A stretch of DNA of 64,000 nt, from sequence record MZ574432.2, one strand, 5' to 3'. Made by a program: the position numbers and the translations under genes. Below, in pieces: positions 17,980 to 28,906 of the stretch. How positions within the stretch are numbered: the stretch's first letter is position 1; the number at the start of each line of letters is the position of its first letter. The notes beneath the pieces are model-generated. The model made no database searches, had not been told where the DNA came from, and saw only the letters and a list, made by a program, of their open reading frames with translations.

Positions 17980-18054
17980 GCGGCTATAGCTCAGTGGTAG
18001 AGCGCCTGCTTGCCATGCAGGAGGTCGAGGGTTCGAGCCCCTCTAGCCGCTCCA
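17980..18054 (+). tRNA. tRNA-Gly(GCC)
   Basis: Cloverleaf GCGGCTA/TAGCCGC, anticodon stem cctgc/gcagg, loop ttGCCat, U73, CCA. Confidence 0.95.
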
Positions 18055-18076
18055 TTCTAAGCACAAGGACAAGACT

Positions 18077-18337
18077 ATGAAATCGCGCGACTTCTGTTAT
18101 TGGCTCCAGGGCCTGTTCGAACTGCAAAACCCCGTGGTGATCAACGAGACCCAGACCCGCCTGATCAAGGCGCATCTGAACATGGTCTTCACCCACGAGA
18201 TCGACCCCAGCTTCCCGGCCGCCCAGCAGGCGGCGTTGAACGCCGATCACGAGGCCGGCAAGAAGCCCGCGTCGAAGAACAACGGCTTCTTCGAGATTGT
18301 CGATTCGGGCCGCCAAGAAGGCCTCATGCGCTGCTGA
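18077..18337 (+). CDS. Conserved phage hypothetical protein, 86 aa
   Basis: AAGGA SD; recurrent phage N-terminus M..RDFCYWLQG.FEL. Confidence 0.7.
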   Translation: MKSRDFCYWLQGLFELQNPVVINETQTRLIKAHLNMVFTHEIDPSFPAAQQAALNADHEAGKKPASKNNGFFEIVDSGRQEGLMRC

Positions 18338-18367
18338 CGCGGCGCCCACTTCCCAGGACAATTCATC

Positions 18368-18658
18368 ATGCAGACCGTCGACCTTCTGGGCGACGCGCCA
18401 TTCTGCGCGCGTCCAGGCTACCATCTGCGCGACTTCCGCAAGGGCGTACTGGGCGAGGCCTCCAAGGTCCGTGAGGAGACCGAGGAGTTCCTGGACGCCG
18501 TCGAGCAAGGCTCGCTGATCATGGCGTTGGTGGAGCTTTCCGATCTCCACGGCGCCATCGAAGCCTATCTGGCCAAGCATGCGCCGGGCGTCACCATGGA
18601 CGATCTCGCCCAAATGTCCGCCATCACCAAAAGGGCCTTCCGTCATGGACGTCGCTAG
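18368..18658 (+). CDS. MazG-like nucleotide pyrophosphohydrolase fold, 96 aa
   Basis: K..EE..E...A........ELSDL all-alpha NTP-PPase pattern. Confidence 0.65.
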   Translation: MQTVDLLGDAPFCARPGYHLRDFRKGVLGEASKVREETEEFLDAVEQGSLIMALVELSDLHGAIEAYLAKHAPGVTMDDLAQMSAITKRAFRHGRR

Positions 18659-19223
18659 CTGGAAACGCCTTTCGCAGGCGATCGAGTTCTACACCGCGCG
18701 CGGCTACACCTATGTCGACGCGCCCTGGGCCGTACGCCGGCCGGTCATGGACATGACCTGCCCGCGCCCCGATCTAGCCAGTCCTCTGGGCGAGAAGTTC
18801 CTGGTCGGTTCGGCCGAGCAGTCCTTCCTGGACCTGGAGATCGACGTCCTGGGCAAGGGACGCTTCGTGGCCTTGACGCCGTGTTTCCGCGTCGCCGATG
18901 AAGGCCGCTCACCGCTGCATGACGGCTACTTCATGAAGGTCGAGCTTTACGCCAATCTCACCGAGAACCGAGGGCGTGTCCTCAATCGCATGATCGACGA
19001 CGCCATGACCTGTTTCCGATCCTTCGGGGCCGGTGACCTGGACGTCTACAACACCTTCGAGCAGGACGCCAAGCTGACCCGCGACATCGTCATGCGCGGC
19101 GTGGAGATCGGCTCCTATGGCATGCGCACGCGTCGCCATCCCGTGCTCGACGAGGACCACACCTGGGTCTACGGCACTGGCCTTGCCGAACCGCGCTTCT
19201 CGCGCGCCCTCCAGCGCCTCTGA
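18645..19223 (+). CDS. Stand-alone class II aminoacyl-tRNA synthetase-like catalytic core, 192 aa
   Basis: Motif 2-like LTPCFRVADE...LHDGYFMKVELY and motif 3-like VYGTGLAEPRF; no anticodon-binding domain; ATG 18645 overlaps the upstream gene. Confidence 0.7.
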   Translation: MDVASWKRLSQAIEFYTARGYTYVDAPWAVRRPVMDMTCPRPDLASPLGEKFLVGSAEQSFLDLEIDVLGKGRFVALTPCFRVADEGRSPLHDGYFMKVELYANLTENRGRVLNRMIDDAMTCFRSFGAGDLDVYNTFEQDAKLTRDIVMRGVEIGSYGMRTRRHPVLDEDHTWVYGTGLAEPRFSRALQRL

Positions 19224-19234
19224 TTAGGATTTCA

Positions 19235-19258
19235 CGACACGCTGTCGTAATCCTTGAC
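19235..19258 (+). promoter_or_regulatory. Motif promoter (copy 3) with palindrome CGACA-N3-TGTCG
   Basis: cgaca-cgc-tgtcg-taatc-cttgac; predicted start site coincides with ATG 19290. Confidence 0.7.
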
Positions 19259-19289
19259 AAGCACGAATTTCTGTGAGACACGTCGCCTT

Positions 19290-19355
19290 ATGACCTTCTC
19301 GATCTTCCTTTTCCGAGAGACCGGCTCGCCGAGCCGAGATACCAGCGCCTCCTAG
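19290..19355 (+). CDS. Putative leader peptide 1 (MTFSIFLFRETGSPSRDTSAS, 21 aa)
   Basis: Apparently leaderless ATG at the predicted start site; overlaps alternative hairpins just before tRNA-Glu. Confidence 0.45.
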   Translation: MTFSIFLFRETGSPSRDTSAS

Positions 19356-19383
19356 GCTGCTGGTACGACGGCTCGCGCTATGT

Positions 19384-19460
19384 GGGCCTGTCTTCTAAAT
19401 GGACTAGGAATCTCGGCTTTCAATCGAGCAATGCGGGTTCGAGCCCCGTCAGGCCTACCA
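19384..19460 (+). tRNA. tRNA-Glu(UUC)
   Basis: GGGCCTG/CAGGCCT acceptor, loop ctTTCaa, TTCGA T-loop, CCA. Confidence 0.9.
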
Positions 19461-19484
19461 ACATCACAATCGAAAGCCACCCTG

Positions 19485-19560
19485 GGCTCTAGGGTGTGAA
19501 GGTTAGCAGCGCCGGCTTGTCAGGCCGGAGGAAGGGGTTCGAGTCCCCTTAGAGTCGCCA
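19485..19560 (+). tRNA. tRNA-Asp(GUC)
   Basis: GGCTCTA/TAGAGTC acceptor, stem ccggc/gccgg, loop ttGTCag, G73, CCA. Confidence 0.9.
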
Positions 19561-19808
19561 TTTGCCCAAGCGGGCACATCCAATCGAAAGCGCCGGGCAA
19601 GAGACTTAGCGGTCTCCAAGCGCCTGGGTCGAGCCAAAAACGCAGGGGTCGTCGGGTCCGCAAGGACAGCCCTGGTCAGTGAGCGATGGCGGATAAGAAA
19701 TGGGTCCCAACCTGCTGAAGGTGGTTGGCGCCGCCGAGGGCGTTACCTCGGATTTCACGTGACGACACTGCCCCACTGGCTTTTGCCATGCGCGTCCGTT
19801 GCTCTAGG
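19561..19808 (+). ncRNA. Candidate structured ncRNA (~250-290 nt) co-transcribed with tRNA-Glu/Asp
   Basis: No credible ORF; many short hairpins (GCAA-capped gtcc/ggac, gagac/gtctc, ccgagg/cctcgg), long-range gtcgtc/gacgac pairing, ends at a terminator. Confidence 0.5.
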
Positions 19809-19809
19809 A

Positions 19810-19848
19810 CCCCAGGACAGGCTAGCCCTCTCCTGGGGTTTCCTTTTT
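19810..19848 (+). terminator. Intrinsic terminator
   Basis: ccccagga...tcctgggg stem followed by tttcc-ttttt. Confidence 0.75.
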
Positions 19849-19888
19849 GTGGGACCCAAGAAATTTTTCACGGATTCGTGCATCGTTT

Positions 19889-19923
19889 CTTGACATCCTC
19901 TTGAGCCTGTGTCATAGGCTCAA
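19889..19923 (+). promoter_or_regulatory. Promoter of the large tRNA operon (CTTGACA; degenerate motif) overlapped by inverted repeat ttgagcct/aggctcaa
   Basis: TTGACA at 19890-19895 directly after a terminator; inverted repeat 19901-19923 covers the -10 region. Confidence 0.6.
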
Positions 19924-19969
19924 TCCTCAACAGCCCAGATCGGGCTTTCACTCCGCCGGAACAAGGTCC

Positions 19970-20089
19970 ATGACCCGCATCCATACCACGCTGACGACCG
20001 CCAAGCCCGCCTCCACCGGCGCGCTTACGCTCGCCTCGTGGCCGGCGTCGAGCAAGCCGCTATTGCGGCACTCAGCGGTTCTCGCCTAA
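19970..20089 (+). CDS. Putative leader peptide 2 (MTRIHTTLTTAKPASTGALTLASWPASSKPLLRHSAVLA, 39 aa)
   Basis: AAGG SD; 33/39 residues are amino acids of the 12 downstream tRNAs; end of ORF forms one arm of a long hairpin. Confidence 0.65.
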   Translation: MTRIHTTLTTAKPASTGALTLASWPASSKPLLRHSAVLA

Positions 20090-20214
20090 CAGGCGACCGC
20101 TCCGGGTGCCGCTTCTAAGCCGCACCCGATCTCTCCTCCGACACATCTTCCCAAAACGTCGTAGCTGAACCGGGTGCTCCTGATCTCTCAGGAGATCGCC
20201 ATCTATTTCAGTTT

Positions 20215-20290
20215 CGGTGTGTAGCTCAGTTGGTAGAGCACGGGGTTTGGGACCTCGGGGTCGGAGGTTCGAGCCCTCTTGCACCGACCA
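20215..20290 (+). tRNA. tRNA-Pro(UGG)
   Basis: CGGTGTG/TGCACCG acceptor, loop ttTGGga, CCA. Confidence 0.9.
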
Positions 20291-20360
20291 ATTCGCCCTC
20301 CGCCGGCCTTAGGCCGGACCGCGATCGCTTGAGCGTCGGCGGAGGCGTGTTCTTTGTCGT

Positions 20361-20439
20361 GCCGGTATAGCTCAGTCTGGTAGTCAGCGACTGCCTCGTA
20401 AGCAGTAGGTCCGGGGTTCGAATCCTCGTGCCGGCACCA
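20361..20439 (+). tRNA. tRNA-Thr(CGU)
   Basis: GCCGGTA/TGCCGGC, stem actgc/gcagt, loop ctCGTaa, CCA. Confidence 0.9.
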
Positions 20440-20483
20440 CCAAGAACACGATCAACAGAAGGATCAACAAGACACAGACTTTC

Positions 20484-20570
20484 GGGCGAGTAGCCGAGTG
20501 GTTAAAGGCACCTGACTCTTAATCAGGCGTGAGAAATCCTACGTGGGTTCGAATCCCACCTCGCCCTCCA
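20484..20570 (+). tRNA. tRNA-Lys(CUU) with atypical long variable arm
   Basis: GGGCGAG/CTCGCCC, stem cctga/tcagg, loop ctCTTaa, 15-nt variable region, U73, CCA; 87 nt. Confidence 0.85.
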
Positions 20571-20657
20571 TCGATAAAGACTTCCATGTTCCCGTACGGG
20601 AACATTTCGGCCAGGACAAGGGTCCTGGGATGGAAATGTTCCCGATCGGGATCACGG

Positions 20658-20744
20658 GCGGGTGTGGCGAAGTTGGTAGCCGCGCGAGTCTCAGGTACTC
20701 GTGGTCGAAAGGCCGGGGAGGTTCGAATCCTCTCACCCGCACCA
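20658..20744 (+). tRNA. tRNA-Leu(CAG)
   Basis: GCGGGTG/CACCCGC, stem cgagt/actcg, loop ctCAGgt, long variable arm, A73, CCA. Confidence 0.92.
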
Positions 20745-20756
20745 ACACTCCTCTGG

Positions 20757-20843
20757 GCGGCGCTGGCGGAATGGTAGACGCGCCGGCTTCAAGTCCCGTG
20801 TGTCCGTAAGGATGTCCGAGTTCGAATCTCGGGCGCCGCACCA
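20757..20843 (+). tRNA. tRNA-Leu(CAA), weak anticodon stem
   Basis: GCGGCGC/GCGCCGC, Leu-type D arm and variable arm, loop ttCAAgt; stem ccggc/cccgt has two mismatches. Confidence 0.75.
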
Positions 20844-20886
20844 AGACGAGGGTTGGCGATGGAAAGCGAAGGTCAAAGCGAGACGT

Positions 20887-20973
20887 GCGGAAGTGGCGTA
20901 ACGGTAGCCGCGCCAGACTGAGTATCTGGTGATCTAAAGGGTCGTGGAGGTTCGAGTCCTCTCTTCCGCACCA
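20887..20973 (+). tRNA. tRNA-Leu(GAG)
   Basis: GCGGAAG/CTTCCGC, stem ccaga/tctgg, loop ctGAGta, long variable arm, CCA. Confidence 0.92.
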
Positions 20974-21008
20974 AACACAAGGAGAGGTAAGAGACAGATT
21001 TGGTTTGT

Positions 21009-21080
21009 GCTGAAATGGCCTAGCGGTAAAGGCGCTGCATTGTGGATGCAGACACGATGGTTCGAATCCATCTTTCAGTG
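21009..21080 (+). tRNA. tRNA-His(GUG), no encoded CCA, no G-1
   Basis: GCTGAAA/TTTCAGT, stem ctgca/tgcag, loop ttGTGga; abuts tRNA-Ala with a 1-nt spacer. Confidence 0.85.
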
Positions 21081-21081
21081 C

Positions 21082-21157
21082 GGGGATATAGCTCAGTTGG
21101 TAGAGCAGTTGCTTTGCAAGCATCAGGTCGTCGGTTCGAGCCCGACTATCTCCACCA
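21082..21157 (+). tRNA. tRNA-Ala(UGC)
   Basis: GGGGATA/TATCTCC with G3:U70, loop ttTGCaa, CCA. Confidence 0.92.
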
Positions 21158-21222
21158 GACCAGGGGACCCAGGCTGCGGCGCCGGATCGGCGACCACCTG
21201 GGTCCGTGACAACAAGAAAACT

Positions 21223-21316
21223 GGAGGGCTGGCAGAGCCTGGGTTAATGCACCCGTTTCGAAAACGGGCAGGGGCTGAAAGGTCCCTCGGGGGTTCAAAT
21301 CCCTCGCCCTCCGCCA
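21223..21316 (+). tRNA. tRNA-Ser(CGA)
   Basis: GGAGGGC/GCCCTCC, stem cccgt/acggg, loop ttCGAaa, long variable arm, G73, CCA. Confidence 0.92.
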
Positions 21317-21335
21317 ACACCAAGCCGGCATCTTT

Positions 21336-21427
21336 GGAAGGATGGCTGAGCCGGCTGAAAGCACCCGCCTGGAAAGTGGGTCGACCTCACAAGGGTCGCG
21401 GGGGTTCGAATCCCTCTCCTTCCGCCA
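21336..21427 (+). tRNA. tRNA-Ser(GGA)
   Basis: GGAAGGA/TCCTTCC, loop ctGGAaa, long variable arm, G73, CCA. Confidence 0.92.
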
Positions 21428-21462
21428 GATACCGAGCCGGCGCGGATCGCCGGCCGAAGCTA

Positions 21463-21552
21463 GGTGGGTTGACCGAGTGGTAAGGTGCGCGGTTGCTAAC
21501 CGCAGGTCAGCCTGGAAGGGCTGCGGGGGTTCGATCCCCTCACCCACCGCCA
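21463..21552 (+). tRNA. tRNA-Ser(GCU)
   Basis: GGTGGGT/ACCCACC, loop ttGCTaa, long variable arm, G73, CCA. Confidence 0.92.
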
Positions 21553-21567
21553 TAGCTTCGACGATGC

Positions 21568-21644
21568 AGGGGTGTAGCTCAACTGGCTAGAGCGTCGGTC
21601 TCCAAAACCGAAGGTTGCGGGTTCGAGTCCCGCCGCCCCTGCCA
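21568..21644 (+). tRNA. tRNA-Trp(CCA)
   Basis: AGGGGTG/CGCCCCT, stem tcggt/accga, loop ctCCAaa, G73, CCA. Confidence 0.92.
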
Positions 21645-21666
21645 ACATTTTCCGCGATTCAGGACC

Positions 21667-21945
21667 ATGACCAAGAAAGGAGGACCCCTGATGAAACCCG
21701 CACCCACTATGACCCAATGCCGCTTGACGCGCGGTGACCAGGGCGTCCAAGTCTCCTGGATTCCCAGCGAGTTCGCCCAGGTCGGCCGCATCGTCGATCT
21801 GAAGGAAAAGGACTACTGGTCCAACGGCTGGCGGGTCGACCAGACCTGGGGCACCATGGACGCCAGCGTGATCGCCGATCGCAGTCGAGATCACCTCAAC
21901 CACAGCAAGGCCACCGGCGATCGATGGCCCACCGCCCGCGCCTAG
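21667..21945 (+). CDS. Hypothetical protein, 92 aa (start could be 21691)
   Basis: AGGA and GGAGG SD sites; last ORF before a terminator. Confidence 0.7.
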   Translation: MTKKGGPLMKPAPTMTQCRLTRGDQGVQVSWIPSEFAQVGRIVDLKEKDYWSNGWRVDQTWGTMDASVIADRSRDHLNHSKATGDRWPTARA

Positions 21946-21948
21946 CGC

Positions 21949-21982
21949 AAAAAGGCCGCCCAGGTCTCCCTGGGCGGCCTTT
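21949..21982. terminator. Bidirectional terminator
   Basis: aaaaaggccgcccagg-tct-ccctgggcggccttt between convergent genes. Confidence 0.8.
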
Positions 21983-21988
21983 CACGTT

Positions 21989-22489
21989 CTAGGCGTGTGG
22001 TGGGAAGTCACCCGTCAGGACGCCCGCCGTGCGCGCGTAGCAGAACCAGTAGGAGCCGGTCCAGCGCAGCATGGCCACTTCGGGGACATGCACGGCCTCG
22101 ACAAGGCGTTGATAGCCTGTGCCATCGCCCTCAGTATCCGCTTTGCCGTCCATATCCACATCAGGCTGCGAGGCCTGGGGAACCTGTAAGGTCAGAGCCG
22201 CCGAAACATCGGAGAAGACGATGCGAGGGTTTGCGACCCCGTAGTGAGGACGTGCGAAGACGACAACCTGAGAGGAGCCAAAGGCCGTATTTGTCCTCGG
22301 ATAGAACTGAAGCTGAAGCTCATCGCCGACTTCCGTCGCCGGCATGAGCGAAGCGTAGAAGGACCCTTGAAACGGTTGATCGGGATCGACTTGCTTCGTG
22401 TAGATGTCGATGATGCCGACCTCGCCATTGGCGTTCAGGATTTCGGCGGCGGCCTCGTAGACCGTGTTGATGACGATGGTTCTGGACAT
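21989..22489 (-). CDS. Hypothetical protein, 166 aa (paralog 1 of a tandem pair)
   Basis: Shares HYGVANPRIVF, D.DGKAD.EGDG.GYQRL and LRWTGS.WFCYAR with 22510-22995. Confidence 0.8.
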   Translation of the reverse strand: MSRTIVINTVYEAAAEILNANGEVGIIDIYTKQVDPDQPFQGSFYASLMPATEVGDELQLQFYPRTNTAFGSSQVVVFARPHYGVANPRIVFSDVSAALTLQVPQASQPDVDMDGKADTEGDGTGYQRLVEAVHVPEVAMLRWTGSYWFCYARTAGVLTGDFPPHA

Positions 22490-22509
22490 GTGTCTGGTTA
22501 CCCTAGGCT

Positions 22510-22995
22510 TTAGAGTGAGAGGCTGTCAGTGGTCATCATGCCGAGCGAGCGGGCATAACAGAACCAGAACGAGCCCGTCCACCGAAGGAGTGCAACGAGA
22601 GGGACGCCGGGGGCTTCGCCCAAGCGCTGGTAGCCAGGACCATCACCCTCGACGTCAGCCTTGCCGTCGAAGTCCAGGTCTTTCTGCTCTATCGCACCCG
22701 CGTACAGAGCCATAGCATCTGTGATGTTCGGCGCACGATCAGCGAAAACGATCCTCGGGTTGGCCACACCATAGTGCGGCAAGGCGAAGATCAGCACGGT
22801 AGCGAAGCTACCCTTGCTGGCGGGGAAGACCTGAACCTGGAGGTCGTCTCCGACCTCTCGACCGGGAGCGAGGGCGGCGTAGAGAAAGCCACCACCGATT
22901 TCAGGAATGATGTTGATCACCCCTTTGAGGCCGTTGGGATTTATCGGCTCAGCTAATTGCCGTTCGGTGGCGCGCACCAGCACGTTCATCGCCAT
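22510..22995 (-). CDS. Hypothetical protein, 161 aa (paralog 2)
   Basis: ATG at 22995 with AAGGA SD; homology to paralog 1 begins here, so the listed 23265 start is too long. Confidence 0.8.
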   Translation of the reverse strand: MAMNVLVRATERQLAEPINPNGLKGVINIIPEIGGGFLYAALAPGREVGDDLQVQVFPASKGSFATVLIFALPHYGVANPRIVFADRAPNITDAMALYAGAIEQKDLDFDGKADVEGDGPGYQRLGEAPGVPLVALLRWTGSFWFCYARSLGMMTTDSLSL

Positions 22996-23115
22996 CGGGA
23001 GTCTATCCTTAGGAAGGCCGGCCCAGCGCCGGCAAAGCTCCCTACCCGATCTAGGAACACCGATCGACCCAAGATCGCAAACTATCCACAGCAACTTTTG
23101 CGACAGTCTAACGAC

Positions 23116-23143
23116 AAAAAGAAAGGCTCCCGAAGGAGCCTTC
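23116..23143 (-). terminator. Terminator for the minus-strand gene 23504-23148
   Basis: Minus strand ggaaggctcc-TTCG-ggagcctttc-ttttt. Confidence 0.7.
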
Positions 23144-23147
23144 CAAA

Positions 23148-23504
23148 TCACGCCATCGCTGCGTTGCGTTTCCCGCGCTGCTTTTCCAACGCGGCCTCCA
23201 TCGACTGCCAAACGAGCCGAGGCCGCCACGGCTCCTCGTTGTAAGGCGTGTCCAGGTAGCACCACCCCTCGCTAGGGGTCGCCAGGATCGGAAGACCTTC
23301 GAAGTCTTCGTCCTGCTGCTCCTCGGGGGTCAAACGCCGCGTCGACCAACGCAACCCGCCGCTCGGCAGCTTGGCGAATTCCAGGCCGCTAGGATCGCGG
23401 TCCTCGTCGAGGATGTCGAAGAGTTCGATGAGGTCCTGGGCATTGACCAGGAAGGCCTCGGTCTGTTCGTCGGGATTGATCGCCCGCACGAGATAGAGCG
23501 CCAT
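23148..23504 (-). CDS. Hypothetical acidic protein, 118 aa
   Basis: ATG 23504 with AAAGGAG SD (MALYLVRAINPDEQTEAFLV...). Confidence 0.75.
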   Translation of the reverse strand: MALYLVRAINPDEQTEAFLVNAQDLIELFDILDEDRDPSGLEFAKLPSGGLRWSTRRLTPEEQQDEDFEGLPILATPSEGWCYLDTPYNEEPWRPRLVWQSMEAALEKQRGKRNAAMA

Positions 23505-23591
23505 GGGTGTCTCCTTTATTGGCAAAGCCAAGGTGGGAGACAAGGACCGGGTTGTCCAGGCACTATAGTGCTGAAAAGATGTCCAGACACG

Positions 23592-23618
23592 AAAAAGGAC
23601 TCCCGAAGGAGCCCCTTG
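23592..23618 (-). terminator. Terminator closing the minus-strand non-coding unit
   Basis: Minus strand ggggctcc-TTCG-ggagtcc-ttttt. Confidence 0.75.
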
Positions 23619-23629
23619 CGTAGGGTTCA

Positions 23630-24462
23630 AAGGCTTGAGACACTAGGGCCTTCACGACGAGACCTCAGGGATTATCCTTGTTCAGGTTCCCCTGGGTGTC
23701 CAGGAGCCTTTCGGCTTCTCTGTCCCGCCAACGACGGTCATTTTAGGTCCACCACAGACCGTCCTGATGTACTACTCAGCCTCTCCACTACCATCAAAGG
23801 CTGGCCGGCCCTCAAAGGAAGCTTCCTGACACTCGTTACGACACCTTGCGAGGTCCCGCAACGTCCCTGCTAAGCCGAAGCCCAGGGAACGTAGTCGTCT
23901 ATTGCACACCAGCGGCCAGACTTTCGCTTTTGCTTCGTCAGCCAAATGATGATTGGAGGTTGGTTTACGCCCCCAGCTTGCCTTCCCTAGTGACGACGTG
24001 CTGTCCAGAGCTTCGTGGCTTTTGGCCACAAAATACTCGACGCCGTCCTGATCCCTAGATGGGACCGATCTGATCCGATTTCCCCTCCAGGTGCTTTTCA
24101 CACCCAGCTTGGAACCCAGAACAAATTGGGTCTCGCCCTAAGCCGGTATCACTCCGACCTCGAACTGTCGCAGATAGCTGTCGCTGATCCGCCCCCTACA
24201 CCTGAATCCTCGTCCACTCGGTCGTTTTGAGTTGACATGTCCGGTGGTTCTCAGGCCACACCAGAGCGTCTCACGACGCCTTTCGAACACATCACGACCT
24301 CATCGACTATCCTCCACCCCCGCTTTTAACGGGCTATGAAGGACGGGCTGGTTAGACCCGGTCTTCGATGCCTGCTTGAGTGGTCCCGGTTGCCCAGGCG
24401 ACGAGGGGTAGGTCCCCCGCCCAGCCTCCGAGTTGCCCCGGCGGCCCCGCTCTCAAGCGATG
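23630..24462 (-). ncRNA. Candidate large structured ncRNA (~830 nt; size and context recall the GOLLD class)
   Basis: Promoter-to-terminator unit with no credible ORF; many GNRA/UUCG-capped hairpins on the minus strand; 5'/3' ends complementary (GCUUGAGA/UCUCAAGC). Confidence 0.65.
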
Positions 24463-24468
24463 ACTGGG

Positions 24469-24499
24469 TTGTAGACGGACGATTTCCGGCGGTCAACAG
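24469..24499 (-). promoter_or_regulatory. Minus-strand sigma70-type promoter (TTGACC-N16-CTACAA)
   Basis: Reverse complement of ttgtag-acggacgatttccggc-ggtcaa; back-to-back with the plus-strand motif promoter. Confidence 0.55.
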
Positions 24500-24534
24500 C
24501 CAAATCGCACTTTTTTCGAAAAAGTTTCGATCGG

Positions 24535-24558
24535 CGTCGCGATGACGCGTTTCTTGAC
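24535..24558 (+). promoter_or_regulatory. Motif promoter (copy 4) with palindrome CGTCG-N3-TGACG
   Basis: cgtcg-cga-tgacg-cgttt-cttgac. Confidence 0.7.
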
Positions 24559-24589
24559 CCGCCCTTCGCGATCAGGCAGAACCATCGGC

Positions 24590-24918
24590 GAGGGCGCCAC
24601 GCGTAGTGGAAGAATCCGTGATCCCGCCCAAGGCGACGCCGCGTATCGACCTACGGTCATGCGCAATAGGCCGACCCTAAGCCGCATCGCGTCGACTACC
24701 TGCATGCTCCAGGCACTGAGCAAATCCCGGTCCGGCGGACATCCCACGAAGCTGGTGGAGATAACCGGAGGTTACCGTTCCTGTGGAGCGGATGGAAGGA
24801 AGGGTCTCAGTCGAGCCCTGGTAGGCCGTCCAGCCAGTAGCGCTGCTGTCTGGGTCCGGGACCGCCCAATCGACGACTCGCGAAAAGAGCCCGGCTGGTT
24901 TCGCGGCTGGCCGGGCTC
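24590..24918 (+). ncRNA. Candidate structured RNA or long 5' leader (~330 nt)
   Basis: Follows a motif promoter; multi-helix junctions (cgacgc/gcgtcg, tcccggtcc/gggtccggga, agggtctc/gagccct); ends in hairpin gagcccggc/gccgggctc. Confidence 0.45.
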
Positions 24919-24927
24919 ACTAACCGC

Positions 24928-25263
24928 TTGAGAACCCTCATGATCGACAACACCTTCATCCAGGCCGACGGCCCGCTCTATCTGACGCTGGAAGCGGCCC
25001 TGGAGGCGCCCGGCGCGATCTACACCCACGTCAAGAAGGGCGGCATCTATCGCCGTATGGGTGAGGCCAAGTACGCCGGCGACGCGGCGGCCCAGACGCT
25101 GGAAGGCGTGATGATGGCCGTCTATGAGCACCTCTACCCATACGCGCACTCCTTCTTTGTGCGTCCTCAAAGTGAGTTTGTCGAGGTCGTGCGGACCCAG
25201 CATGGCGAGCACCGCCGTTTCGTCTTTCACACCAATGAGATACTGACCGTTCTCGACACTTGA
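24928..25263 (+). CDS. DUF1653-like protein, 111 aa
   Basis: Y.H.KKGG.Y.....A........MAVY..LY......FVRP.SEF...V......RF pattern. Confidence 0.7.
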   Translation: MRTLMIDNTFIQADGPLYLTLEAALEAPGAIYTHVKKGGIYRRMGEAKYAGDAAAQTLEGVMMAVYEHLYPYAHSFFVRPQSEFVEVVRTQHGEHRRFVFHTNEILTVLDT

Positions 25264-25300
25264 GGGTACGTGAGACCCCATACCGTGCCCTGCGGCATGG

Positions 25301-25316
25301 TGACGCAATCCTTGAC
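25301..25316 (+). promoter_or_regulatory. Motif promoter (copy 5)
   Basis: tgacg-caatc-cttgac upstream of the cadherin-repeat gene. Confidence 0.7.
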
Positions 25317-25365
25317 TTGGCCTACGATCTAGGGTAGAGACGAGACCCTCTCTCCCAAGGAAATC

Positions 25366-27090
25366 GTGATGCTCAAGCCGCAAGCCTCTTCGCGGCGCGC
25401 GCGCCTCGCGCCCGCGTCGATCCCCATCATTCCGGCTGACATCGCCCTGGTCGGCGCGGTCATCCCCGCCGGCAGTCCGGCCGGGACCCTGGTCGGCACG
25501 CTGAGCGCGCTACCGGCCGCCGGCGACTACGAGTTCACCCTACTCGACAGCGCGGGCGGGCGCTTTGCCATTCAGGGCTCGGCCCTGGTCGCGGGCGCCA
25601 CGCCTTCGGCCGGTGGGGAGAACCCGACGATTACCGTGCGCACCACGGCGGCGTTCTCGCGACTGACGTTCGACAAGACCTTCTCGATCGCTGTCCAGAC
25701 CGTCGTCGCCCCGATCACGCTGTCGCCGACCAATCCGACCGTCGCCGAGAACACTGCTGCCGGCGTGACGGTCGCGTCGATTTCCTCGCCCGGCGCGACC
25801 TTGAGCCTGACCGACAATGCCGGCGGCCGGTTCGCCATCAGCGGGACCAATCTGGTCACCGGCGCGACGGCGACCAACTATGAGGTGGCCACCAGCCACG
25901 ATGTGACCATCCGCGCCGAGTATAACGGCGATGTGACGACCAAGACCGTGACGGTCCAGGTCTCCAACGTCGTCGAGATCACCAATATCACCCTGGCCGC
26001 CAGCAGCATCCCCGAGAACTCGGCCGCCGGCGTGGTCGTCGGGCAACTGGCCTCGGTCCCGCCCGGTGCGGCCCTGACCCTGACCGACAGCGCCGGCAGC
26101 CGCTTTGCCATCGACGGCAGCAACCGTCTCGTGGCTGGCTCGGTCGCCACGGACTACGAGACCAACACCACACACGACGTCTCCGTGCGCGCCACCCAAG
26201 GCCCCGACGTCTACAACAAGACCTTCACCATCAGCGTCACCAACGTCAATGAACTGACCGACATCACCCTGTCGGCCAATTCGATCGCCGAGAACTCGGC
26301 CGCTGGCGTCGTGGTCGGCAACCTCGCCAGCGTGATCCCCGGCGCCTCGTTCGCTGTGACCGGCCAGACGCCGTCAGGGACCTACTTCACCGTCAACGGC
26401 TCCAACCAGCTTGTGACTGGGGCGACGGCGACCAACTTCGAAGTCAATGCCAGCCACTCGGTCACCGTCACCGCGACCAAGGGCACCGACACCTTCCAAA
26501 AGACCTTCACGATCAACGTCAGCAACCAGACCGAGATCACCGACATCAGCCTGAGCAACGCCAGTATCAACGAAGGTGTCGCCCAGGGCACCGCCGTCGG
26601 CACCCTGTCGTCGACCCCGACGGGCGCGACCTTCTCCTTGGCGCCAACCAACCCTGCGGGCACGCGCTTCCAGGTCTCGGGCACGACGCTGCAACAAGGC
26701 GCGACGCCGAACGATCGCGAAGCCACGCCGACCGTGACGGTGAAGATTCGCGGCACGCGCCAGAGCGAAACCTTCGACAAGGATTTCGTCATCACCATCA
26801 ACAACGTCGTCGAACTGACCGACTTCACGCTGTCGGGCCTGACGATCGACGAGAACGCCGTCCAGGGCACTCCGGTGGGGACGCTGTCGTCGACCCCGAC
26901 GGGCGCGACCTACACCCTGAACGACAATGCCGGCGGGCGCTTCCAGCTTGTCGCCGGCGCCATCCAGGCCGGCGCGGTGGCGACCGACTTCGATACCGCC
27001 ACCAGCCACGACATCATCGTCACAGCCTCCCGAGGCGGCGAGACGATGCAGAAGACCTTCACGATCACGGTCAACGACCTCGGCGACTAG
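25366..27090 (+). CDS. Cadherin-like repeat protein, 574 aa
   Basis: About six ~95-aa repeats (ITL...SI.EN.A.G..VG.L.S...GA...L.D.AG.RF.I.G..L..GA..T(N/D)YE....H.V.VRAT......KTFTI.V.NV.E). Confidence 0.85.
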   Translation: MMLKPQASSRRARLAPASIPIIPADIALVGAVIPAGSPAGTLVGTLSALPAAGDYEFTLLDSAGGRFAIQGSALVAGATPSAGGENPTITVRTTAAFSRLTFDKTFSIAVQTVVAPITLSPTNPTVAENTAAGVTVASISSPGATLSLTDNAGGRFAISGTNLVTGATATNYEVATSHDVTIRAEYNGDVTTKTVTVQVSNVVEITNITLAASSIPENSAAGVVVGQLASVPPGAALTLTDSAGSRFAIDGSNRLVAGSVATDYETNTTHDVSVRATQGPDVYNKTFTISVTNVNELTDITLSANSIAENSAAGVVVGNLASVIPGASFAVTGQTPSGTYFTVNGSNQLVTGATATNFEVNASHSVTVTATKGTDTFQKTFTINVSNQTEITDISLSNASINEGVAQGTAVGTLSSTPTGATFSLAPTNPAGTRFQVSGTTLQQGATPNDREATPTVTVKIRGTRQSETFDKDFVITINNVVELTDFTLSGLTIDENAVQGTPVGTLSSTPTGATYTLNDNAGGRFQLVAGAIQAGAVATDFDTATSHDIIVTASRGGETMQKTFTITVNDLGD

Positions 27091-27093
27091 CAG

Positions 27094-27119
27094 AAAGCCC
27101 GGCTCCGGCCGGGCTTTTT
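27094..27119 (+). terminator. Intrinsic terminator
   Basis: aaagcccggc-tccg-gccgggcttttt. Confidence 0.85.
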
Positions 27120-27194
27120 CGTTGACGGCGTCATTGCGCCGCTTATGGTGGCCTCACGGCGGAGAGATCGCGCCGTTCAGAAGGAGAAACCACC

Positions 27195-27728
27195 ATGACC
27201 ATGATCGTCAAGATCATGACGGGCCATGACCTGCCCGACGATTCCCCCTACAAGACCTTCACCCTGGTGTCCGAAGTCAAGAGCGCGACATTCCACACCC
27301 AGGAAGACAGTGAGGGCCGGCGCCACTCCTACATGCGCGCCTACATCGCTGATCCGGTCAAGACCGCCGAGGTCCCCGGTTTCAGCGAGCACGAAGTGGT
27401 CTATGACATCCCGCCCAACGTCAACGTCTACGTGATGAACGGCAACGGCAAGACCATCTCGTCCTGGACCGCGCCGCCCGTGGCCGAGGGAAAGTTCACC
27501 TTTTCCGCTTCGGCGCCGATCAAATTTGTCGACGTCAGCCGTGACACCCTCTACGGGCGCATGGAAGCCTACTGCAAATATCGGGCAAATGGGTTCACCG
27601 CGATCAAGGCTGCCCTGGCCAGCGGCTTTCCTGATCCGACCAAGGTGATCGACGCGCTGGAAGCCGACCCACTCCTCATCTCCAGGATCGAGGAACTTTC
27701 GGCCCAGGCGTCCACCTCGACGACCTAG
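27195..27728 (+). CDS. Hypothetical protein, 177 aa
   Basis: AAGGAG SD, phage-typical codon usage. Confidence 0.8.
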   Translation: MTMIVKIMTGHDLPDDSPYKTFTLVSEVKSATFHTQEDSEGRRHSYMRAYIADPVKTAEVPGFSEHEVVYDIPPNVNVYVMNGNGKTISSWTAPPVAEGKFTFSASAPIKFVDVSRDTLYGRMEAYCKYRANGFTAIKAALASGFPDPTKVIDALEADPLLISRIEELSAQASTSTT

Positions 27729-27754
27729 GCCGGACGGGCCTGTCGAAAAACACG

Positions 27755-27802
27755 CGTCACGATGTCGTATTTCTTGACAGGCCCAAAAGCCTCCTGTATA
27801 AG
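27755..27802 (+). promoter_or_regulatory. Motif promoter (copy 6), palindrome CGTCA-N3-TGTCG, TTGACA-N17-TATAAG
   Basis: Near-consensus -35 (27774-27779) and -10 (27797-27802); predicted start site at ATG 27810. Confidence 0.85.
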
Positions 27803-27809
27803 CCCCGTT

Positions 27810-27908
27810 ATGAGCAAGTCGTATCGCCAATTTGTGCGCCAGATTCAGTTCGTCCGAGTTAATCGGGCGGGCCGTTCGCGCATGGATGATGGTGGGACCC
27901 GAGTGTAG
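27810..27908 (+). CDS. Putative leader peptide 3 (MSKSYRQFVRQIQFVRVNRAGRSRMDDGGTRV, 32 aa)
   Basis: Leaderless ATG at the predicted start site; codons 5-18 are all readable by the 8 downstream tRNAs; contains an antiterminator strand. Confidence 0.7.
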   Translation: MSKSYRQFVRQIQFVRVNRAGRSRMDDGGTRV

Positions 27909-27937
27909 GGTCCAAAGACCTCTCAATCCATTTCTGC

Positions 27938-27980
27938 GAAGGCCCGCCCAGGTAACCCCTCGGCGGGCCTTCTGCGTTTT
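27938..27980 (+). terminator. Attenuator-like terminator upstream of tRNA cluster 2
   Basis: gaaggcccgcc...ggcgggccttc-tgcgtttt; the 5' arm can instead pair with 27865-27879 inside the leader ORF. Confidence 0.65.
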
Positions 27981-28036
27981 CACCCTTCGTTTTCATCCGG
28001 TAGCGAGCGAGATCATGACCGGAAACTAACCCCTTC

Positions 28037-28126
28037 GGGTCGGCAGGTGGGCACTGGCATGAGCCCAAGGGACTGTAACTCCCCCGTCGAAAGGCTGTGT
28101 AGGTTCGAGTCCTACCCGACCCACCA
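28037..28126 (+). tRNA. tRNA-Tyr(GUA), atypical acceptor/D-arm connector
   Basis: GGGTCGG/CCGACCC, loop ctGTAac, long variable arm, A73, CCA; 5 nt rather than 2 before the D stem. Confidence 0.75.
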
Positions 28127-28159
28127 TTCTTCCGTGGAGCCCGAGTAAACGGCCTCTGC

Positions 28160-28231
28160 GCTTCAGTAGCTCAGTGGTAGAGCGCCGTCTTGACATGGCG
28201 GAGGTCGAAGGTTCGAACCCTTCCTGAAGCA
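28160..28231 (+). tRNA. tRNA-Val(GAC), no encoded CCA
   Basis: GCTTCAG/CTGAAGC, loop ttGACat; 1-nt spacer to tRNA-Ile. Confidence 0.9.
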
Positions 28232-28232
28232 C

Positions 28233-28308
28233 GCTAGGTTAGCTCAGTTGGTAGAGCACCGGACCGATAATCCGGTTGTCACAGGTTCGAGCCCTGTACC
28301 TAGCACCA
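28233..28308 (+). tRNA. tRNA-Ile(GAU), C33
   Basis: GCTAGGT/ACCTAGC, stem ccgga/tccgg, loop ccGATaa, CCA. Confidence 0.88.
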
Positions 28309-28313
28309 AACAC

Positions 28314-28388
28314 TTATACGCTTTACCGTATAAAGTAAAAATATACGATCTAGCGTATAAAATGACTTGAACTTACCGAATTCGGTAA
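28314..28388. repeat. AT-rich cluster of three inverted repeats
   Basis: ttatacg-N6-cgtataa (28314-28333), tatacg-N6-cgtata (28342-28359), ttaccgaattcggtaa (28373-28388). Confidence 0.8.
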
Positions 28389-28423
28389 ATAAAAAGAGGT
28401 GAACAGAGGAAAGGACAAGTAAC

Positions 28424-28498
28424 GGGCCGGTAGCTCAGTGGTAGAGCGCTGCTGTCACATAGCAGATGTCGAGTGTTCGAGACACTCCCGGCCCACCA
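28424..28498 (+). tRNA. tRNA-Val(CAC)
   Basis: GGGCCGG/CCGGCCC, stem ctgct/agcag, loop gtCACat, CCA. Confidence 0.88.
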
Positions 28499-28505
28499 GT
28501 TCAGT

Positions 28506-28579
28506 TGAAGCATGGTGTAATGGTAGCACATCAGAGTTTGGTTCTGGGAGTCTAGGTTCGAGTCCTAGTGCTTCAGCCA
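28506..28579 (+). tRNA. tRNA-Gln(UUG)
   Basis: TGAAGCA/TGCTTCA, loop gtTTGgt, G73, CCA. Confidence 0.88.
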
Positions 28580-28633
28580 ACTGAAAGAGTTTCAGGTCTC
28601 ATGTGACGAGATCAGGAGAGAGAAGGCGAGTTT

Positions 28634-28708
28634 TTCCGAGTAGCTCAGCGGTAGAGCAGCGTGCTGTTAACACGACGGTCGGTGGTTCGATCCCACCCTC
28701 GGGAGCCA
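28634..28708 (+). tRNA. tRNA-Asn(GUU)
   Basis: TTCCGAG/CTCGGGA, loop ctGTTaa, G73, CCA. Confidence 0.92.
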
Positions 28709-28723
28709 TTACTTCTTCTCCAC

Positions 28724-28802
28724 GCCCGGTTAGCTCAGCGGAATTAAGAGCAGACGCCTACGAAGCGTAAGGTCGGGGGTTCGAATCCCTCACCGGGTGC
28801 CA
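28724..28802 (+). tRNA. tRNA-Arg(ACG)
   Basis: GCCCGGT/ACCGGGT, loop ctACGaa, CCA. Confidence 0.9.
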
Positions 28803-28831
28803 TTTTCACGTATGCAGTGCTTCGGCCCTGC

Positions 28832-28906
28832 GGGGATGTAGCTCAGTGGTAGAGCGGGAGACTGAAAATCTCCGCGTCGGTGGTTCGACCCCACCCTTCC
28901 CCACCA
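28832..28906 (+). tRNA. tRNA-Phe(GAA)
   Basis: GGGGATG/CTTCCCC (one U-U), stem ggaga/tctcc, loop ctGAAaa, CCA. Confidence 0.9.

Follow-up and report, generated by a model that had tools for sequence, protein, structure and literature searches.

The analysed window, a stretch of 64,000 nucleotides, comes from the genome of the Caulobacter jumbo phage BL47 (genus Bertelyvirus, MZ574432.2, 327 kb; the region is 100% identical to the record). Window coordinates, used throughout, equal record coordinates minus 62000. A 1.4-kb gap between gp155c and gp156 contains a minus-strand unit in which two domains are enclosed between a predicted promoter and an intrinsic terminator (Table 1). This gap is devoid of annotation in all 11 Bertelyvirus GenBank records. 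The 22 phage tRNA genes of BL47 form two arrays that flank the unit, which bears out the setting beside phage tRNA clusters proposed in the first-pass annotation of this DNA; all the tRNA genes lie on the plus strand and the unit on the minus strand. A scan of the window with Rfam models at their gathering thresholds returned tRNAs only, and at E <= 0.001 the sole non-tRNA family in the whole window was RF02032 (GOLLD).

Among the neighboring proteins, no informative families were identified. The products of gp153c and gp154c are tandem paralogs (phrog_28405, function unknown). In the related phage CcrBL9, the gene adjoining the GOLLD locus belongs to the same family and resembles gp154c of BL47 (32% identity); gp155c is an extra BL47 gene, located between the gp153c-gp154c pair and the RNA, and is unrelated to the CcrBL9 neighbor. 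On the other side, gp157 encodes a protein consisting of repeated units of ~90 aa, with a weak match to the cadherin domain below the Pfam cut-off, and the corresponding CcrBL9 protein carries the annotation "T1SS secreted agglutinin RTX."

Table 1. Features in and around the gp155c-gp156 gap of phage BL47 (window coordinates)
Feature	Position	Strand	Description
tRNA array	17980-21641	+	phage tRNA genes
gp153c	21989-22489	-	phrog_28405
gp154c	22510-22995	-	phrog_28405
gp155c	23148-23504	-	
Intrinsic terminator	23592-23618	-	GGGGCUCC-UUCG-GGAGUCC hairpin, then U5; -15.1 kcal/mol
GOLLD 3' domain	23631-24048	-	418 nt; RF02032 match
Linker	about 23989-23927	-	in 3' domain; contains no tRNA
P13/P14 hairpin	24029-24015	-	in 3' domain; CAAAA loop (A-rich L14)
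GOLLD 5' domain	24049-24462	-	414 nt; outside the Rfam model and the published alignment
5' subdomain 1	24371-24462	-	stem P1 enclosing three hairpins
Stem P1	24458-24452 with 24380-24374	-	in subdomain 1; GCUUGAG with CUCAAGC
GCAA-tetraloop hairpins	24441-24428, 24398-24385	-	two of the three in subdomain 1; from folding
RpoD (sigma-73)-type promoter, host	24468-24496	-	-35 TTGACCG (24496-24490), 14-nt spacer, -10 TCTACAAC (24475-24468)
Conserved non-coding block	24500-24939		~430 nt
Second RpoD-like promoter	24554-24583	+	TTGACCC-N15-GCAGAACC
Hairpin	24888-24919		14 bp; GAGCCCGGCUGGUU...GGCUGGCCGGGCUC
gp156	24940-25263	+	
gp157	25369-27090	+	573 aa
tRNA array	28160-28903	+	phage tRNA genes

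The 3' domain and assignment to the GOLLD family

The RF02032 covariance model matched the minus strand from 24048 to 23631 over its full length (model positions 1-416 of 416) with a score of 104.4 bits (E = 5.3e-28; E = 2.3e-26 when the whole window was scanned). This match surfaced in a permissive scan, not at the gathering threshold: the score falls below the Rfam gathering score of 150 bits, which is an operational database cut-off and not a biological property. The homologous place in CcrBL9 and CcrSC scored 119-120 bits, and other alphaproteobacterial phages yielded 193.5 (Mesorhizobium phage Cp1R7A-A1), 165.3 (phiCbK), 141.9 (Erythrobacter phage L02), and 104.0 bits (Brevundimonas phage Bajun). 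Because these scores run continuously across the threshold, sequence comparison places BL47 inside the GOLLD family, at the divergent end of its score range.

The signature motifs of the 3' domain, namely, the CAAAA loop, AAAGCGAAAGUCU, GAGUAG, AUAAUCCC, and the UCUCA loop, all align to the RF02032 consensus. One consensus hairpin (about model positions 250-267) is absent in BL47, being replaced by an 18-nt gap, and the helices that enclose or neighbor this gap align poorly and carry non-standard pairs. A local hairpin at 23803-23777 may form an alternative fold at the gap; the Bertelyvirus sequences are invariant there and hence uninformative on covariation. Neither the Rfam scan nor ARAGORN detected a tRNA in the BL47 linker. 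The linkers of CcrBL9, CcrSC, and Bajun likewise contain no tRNA; a tRNA gene is present inside the 3'-domain linker of phiCbK (L006 1607-1680), the Mesorhizobium phage (L009 1577-1648), and the Erythrobacter phage (L008 1590-1665).

Kretsch et al. (Nature 2025, PMC12286853) assembled their set of GOLLD RNAs by searching phage genomes with cmsearch and the Rfam model, at a cut-off of E < 1e-5. The alignment in Supplementary File 3 of that study lists MZ574432.2:c86048-85631, which is exactly window 24048-23631, so that the locus had already been catalogued as GOLLD; other Bertelyviruses, phiCbK-like phages, and Bajun are included as well (PMC12286853). Thus, both the kind of element and the locus are already known, with the published catalogue covering the 3' domain only and consisting of the supplementary alignment only. 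A literature search found no paper on GOLLD in Caulobacter phages or Bertelyvirus. What is new here is the full unit, from the promoter via the 5' domain to the terminator, together with covariation support for the 5' domain. Given the full-length match of the 3' half, the size and two-domain layout resembling those of GOLLD env-38 (see below), and the presence of the interval in the published alignment, the unit is very probably a full-length GOLLD gene. The first-pass annotation, made from the raw sequence, had offered a choice between a GOLLD-class and a new large RNA; the former holds, and the latter is not needed, GOLLD identity being sufficient. The model of ROOL, another large phage RNA, matched nothing at E <= 10 within 23300-24800, and nothing at E <= 0.001 in the whole window.

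The 5' domain and its conserved structure

The minimum free energy of the 5' domain is -182.1 kcal/mol (z = -3.64) and that of the whole unit -374.4 kcal/mol (z = -4.3), and in neither case did any shuffled sequence fold as well. The eight minus-strand hairpins listed in the first-pass annotation all fold as described, with energies from -5.0 to -15.0 kcal/mol. Between BL47 and CcrBL9, identity is lower in the 5' domain than in the 3' core (78% vs 89%), which fits the known weaker conservation of the GOLLD 5' region.

RNAalifold analysis of the Bertelyvirus alignment, which comprises four sequences from three effective lineages, predicted 264 pairs, 25 of which show changes on both sides, with ~16 of these 25 in the 5' half. 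Standard pairs occupy 99.4% of the cells of this alignment, compared with 35-49% when the partners are slid, and 0/500 shuffles reached the covariation score; the structure was derived from the same sequences. Across genera, MAFFT alignment of whole 5' domains was unreliable past about 130 columns, and it was replaced by a covariance model of subdomain 1 (R1), for which the 5' start (24462-24371) of the Bertelyvirus sequences was the only input. The top R1 match in each of the Bajun, Erythrobacter phage, Mesorhizobium phage, and phiCbK loci is correctly oriented and precedes the Rfam 3' domain by 373-391 nt, with scores of 37 (E = 6e-7), 33 (E = 6e-6), 21 (E = 0.007), and 20 bits (E = 0.014), respectively, against 16 bits for the best background match. 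Two of these four loci, phiCbK and the Mesorhizobium phage, exceed the Rfam GOLLD threshold (165 and 193 bits). In the R1-based alignment of seven sequences from five lineages (A7), which was fitted to the model and is thereby biased toward the structure, 21 of the 29 pairs change on both sides, standard pairs fill 92.9% of the cells vs 28-47% with slid partners, and 0/500 shuffles reached any of five measures. Even given this bias, the comparison ties the BL47 5' half to the 5' domains of GOLLDs that score above the Rfam threshold. Paired changes among homologs are thus found both within Bertelyvirus and across the five lineages. Searches of IMG/VR added no new relatives: the 5'-start motif was found in CcrBL9 and CcrSC only, and a generic 3'-domain pattern retrieved one contig that has no GOLLD match and is a chance hit.

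Two pairings had been envisaged for the GCUUGAGA segment at the 5' end (24458-24451). The local one, with 24380-24374, corresponds to stem P1 and covaries (GCUUCG/CGAAGC in Bajun). The long-range one, with 23640-23633 near the 3' end, is contradicted by covariation: CcrBL9 and CcrSC read UCUCAACC at the 3' site, and the G-to-C change is compensated in a local 3' hairpin (A2 columns 822/836, C-G to G-C in both phages), not at the 5' end; furthermore, the complementarity of the two ends is absent in Bajun and phiCbK. A different long-range helix, proposed by RNAalifold (A2 columns 331-339 with 806-814), is probably an artifact because it is invariant in Bertelyvirus, clashes with a 3'-domain helix of the Rfam model, and lacks complementarity in Bajun.

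These observations bear on the possibility that only the 3' 418 nt are GOLLD and that the upstream 414 nt are a separate structured RNA or a long leader, adjacent by chance. The Rfam model and the published alignment indeed cover the 3' half alone, the 5' half has no Rfam match, and the predicted fold of the env-38 5' end looks different. However, a single promoter and a single terminator bracket both halves, and no promoter- or terminator-like site was seen between them; in five lineages, subdomain 1 precedes the 3' domain by 373-414 nt; and env-38 is itself a single RNA with a 420/413 split. We therefore consider a chance juxtaposition very improbable and treat the two halves as domains of one GOLLD RNA. 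That this RNA is a decaying, non-functional relic might explain the score of 104 bits against the gathering score of 150 and the loss of one consensus hairpin. Nevertheless, compensatory changes preserve pairs across Bertelyvirus lineages, which diverge at 11-22% of positions, the promoter and the terminator are conserved, all key motifs of the 3' domain are intact, and Bajun, with an equal score, keeps the same layout. Decay of the gene appears highly improbable, and we regard the conserved structure as that of a maintained GOLLD RNA.

Transcription signals and coding potential

The predicted promoter fits the consensus of RpoD, the principal sigma factor of Caulobacter (TTGaCgS / GCtANAWC; PMC8144410), and is preceded by an AT-rich stretch at about 24526-24508. 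The site is kept in CcrBL9 and CcrSC; Bajun and phiCbK have a promoter of the same type in the same relative place, followed by TCATCG. The start site is predicted near 24462-24460. The promoter elements identified in the first pass, TTGACC (24496-24491) and CTACAA (24474-24469) with a 16-nt spacer, are present, but the start coordinate given there, 24499, lies 3 nt too far upstream. A promoter scan found no site in the region because it uses the E. coli -10 consensus. Similarly, a generic terminator scan did not list the hairpin at 23618-23592, and direct folding confirmed it, at the energy given in Table 1, as the UUCG terminator with U5 that had been proposed. This terminator is kept, with base changes, in RB23, CcrBL9, and CcrSC, and equivalent terminators follow the UCUCA loop in Bajun and phiCbK. 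The RNA predicted from these boundaries measures 832 nt (414 + 418), counted from about 24462 to where the model match ends, and the unit including the terminator spans 871 nt.

The unit is conserved in full, both signals included, in CcrBL9 and CcrSC, and similarity between the phages collapses just past the terminator. Because similarity ends there and the next gene differs between phages, the sequences indicate that the unit is an independent module and not a leader. The unit does lie directly upstream of gp155c, gp154c, and gp153c, in the same orientation, as would be expected of a long cis-regulatory 5' untranslated region of these genes; against such a role, a strong terminator intervenes, the gene that comes first downstream differs between phages (gp155c in BL47, an unrelated gp154c-like neighbor in CcrBL9), and phiCbK and Bajun carry the RNA without those genes. 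Accordingly, a leader function is extremely improbable, and the unit is treated as an independent GOLLD gene in what follows.

The unit contains open reading frames (ORFs) of 109, 101, 71, and 70 aa in BL47. In CcrBL9 and CcrSC, the 109-aa ORF (24101-23772, minus strand), for which no Pfam match was found, is interrupted by five stops and a frameshift, and each ORF of the unit exceeding 36 aa is, in one or both of these phages, interrupted by a stop or altered in length by a number of nucleotides not divisible by three. Single- and two-base indels occur throughout the alignment of the unit, and substitutions are distributed over the three codon phases without periodicity (18/18/16). A 34-codon ORF with a TTG start (24456-24352, minus strand) is intact in all three phages, and its amino acids are poorly conserved. 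Stops, frameshifts, and the lack of codon periodicity refute the long ORFs as coding sequences, and none of the short ORFs is conserved in relation to CcrBL9 and CcrSC, in accord with the absence of a credible ORF that was noted at the outset. Although these frames exist in BL47, and the 34-codon ORF in three lineages, there is only a vanishingly small probability that the unit encodes one or more small proteins.

The space between the GOLLD promoter and the start codon of gp156 is occupied by a conserved non-coding block (24500-24939) that was found in Bertelyvirus only. The block is 85-86% identical in CcrBL9 and CcrSC, with indels of 1, 2, and 3 nt; RNAalifold yielded 10 pairs in which both partners vary, alongside about 14 that contain a broken cell. 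Within the block, a second RpoD-like promoter, also kept in CcrBL9, is directed toward gp156 and away from GOLLD, which suggests that it forms a divergent promoter pair with the predicted GOLLD promoter. Farther downstream, about 20 nt before the gp156 start codon, an invariant hairpin is followed by TTTT on the minus strand and is terminator-like in that direction. The equivalent position in the sister phages phiCbK and Bajun is taken by a permuted tmRNA gene, and tmRNA adjoins GOLLD in phiCbK-like, CcrRogue-like, and Brevundimonas phages. We identified no tmRNA in the BL47 block, either by ARAGORN or with Rfam models at E <= 10, nor an ANDN...AA-type tag or a T-loop motif; the Bajun tmRNA had no blastn match in any Bertelyvirus, and no tmRNA was detected with Rfam models in the tRNA region 17980-28903 at any threshold used. 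The block could be either a long structured leader of gp156 or another RNA.

Comparison with characterized GOLLD RNAs and proposed role

The family member with a solved structure, env-38, measures 833 nt. Residues 1-420 make up its less conserved 5' domain and residues 421-833 its universally conserved 3' domain, with a linker that is unresolved (PMC12286853). Cryo-EM showed that it forms a protein-free closed homo-14-mer cage, in which the 5' domains make up the caps and the 3' domains the rings (PMC12286853). At 832 nt, the predicted BL47 RNA is nearly identical in size and is likewise split at about residue 415-420 into a 5' domain, a linker, and a 3' domain; both RNAs come from phage or tRNA-island settings, and BL47 shares the CAAAA loop, AAAGCNAAAGUCU, GAGUAG, AUAAUCC, and UCUCA motifs, with a full-length match to the 3'-domain model. 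The two differ in that BL47 is GC-rich (about 57%) and env-38 AT-rich, and in that BL47 scores 104 bits, below 150, and lacks the hairpin at about model positions 250-267. Moreover, the tools applied here gave no alignment between the 5' domains of BL47 and env-38. When the env-38 5' end is folded as a single sequence, the subdomain-1 junction of BL47 is not recovered, and the same cap or copy number is therefore not assured.

Closer counterparts are found in the phages of related hosts. The phiCbK GOLLD (JX163858.1:105042-105528), from a phage with a Caulobacter host and of the same subfamily, Dolichocephalovirinae, has an RpoD-type promoter followed by TCATCG; its subdomain 1 precedes the 3' domain by 381 nt, and a terminator follows the UCUCA loop. 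Unlike BL47, it scores above the threshold (165 bits), contains a tRNA-Gly in its linker, and has a permuted tmRNA gene divergently upstream. The Bajun GOLLD (ON529858.1:c191902-191484) equals BL47 in score (104 bits) and in its tRNA-free linker, and it comes closest to BL47 in its promoter and 5' start (blastn E = 8e-6; 37 bits with R1), whereas its 5' domain is shorter (379 nt) and a permuted tmRNA lies divergently upstream. ROOL resembles GOLLD as a large ornate phage RNA that is found near tRNA islands and forms cages, but differs in sequence, secondary structure, and copy number, which is 8 (PMC12286853); the BL47 region has no ROOL match.

From these comparisons, a scheme for the working of the RNA can be proposed. 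During infection, host RNA polymerase with RpoD would start near 24462 and stop at the intrinsic terminator at 23592, yielding an RNA of about 832 nt (871 nt if the terminator is counted). This RNA would fold into a lineage-variable 5' domain (414 nt) and a universally conserved 3' domain (418 nt), with a short tRNA-free linker. By homology with env-38 (14 copies), copies of the RNA would most likely build a closed, protein-free multimeric cage, with the 5' domains forming the caps and the 3' domains the rings; for the BL47 RNA itself, we consider such assembly reasonably probable. The cage could act during infection in a translation-linked role, which is proposed because phage tRNA arrays constantly accompany the gene, as does a tmRNA gene in sister phages. 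Hints in the same direction come from other GOLLDs, for which pull-downs show ribosome binding, linkers sometimes contain tRNAs, and expression increases at lysis (PMC12286853). The translation-linked role is the best available guess.

Two further readings would, if true, be the most novel for this locus. One is that the GOLLDs of alphaproteobacterial phages, including Dolichocephalovirinae, share a distinct 5' "cap" domain that opens with a four-way junction bearing two GNRA-type loops, has no workable alignment to env-38, and may build cages differing in geometry or copy number. The other is that the 24500-24939 block of Bertelyvirus, in the slot taken in sister phages by a permuted tmRNA, is a new structured RNA functionally linked to GOLLD. 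Taken jointly, we hold these two readings to be doubtful.

GOLLD RNAs are among the largest non-coding RNAs of bacteria and phages. They form a cage free of protein, yet have no known function. The BL47 locus adds no new kind of element, and the call made from the raw sequence was correct for a gene that had been missed by the default threshold of Rfam and by all 11 GenBank records of the genus. Its analysis defines a full GOLLD gene, in all probability, in a phage of Caulobacter vibrioides CB15, a laboratory host that is harmless as well as genetically tractable. With such a gene in hand in a tractable Caulobacter system, deletion and expression tests of GOLLD function would be straightforward, in either BL47 or phiCbK.
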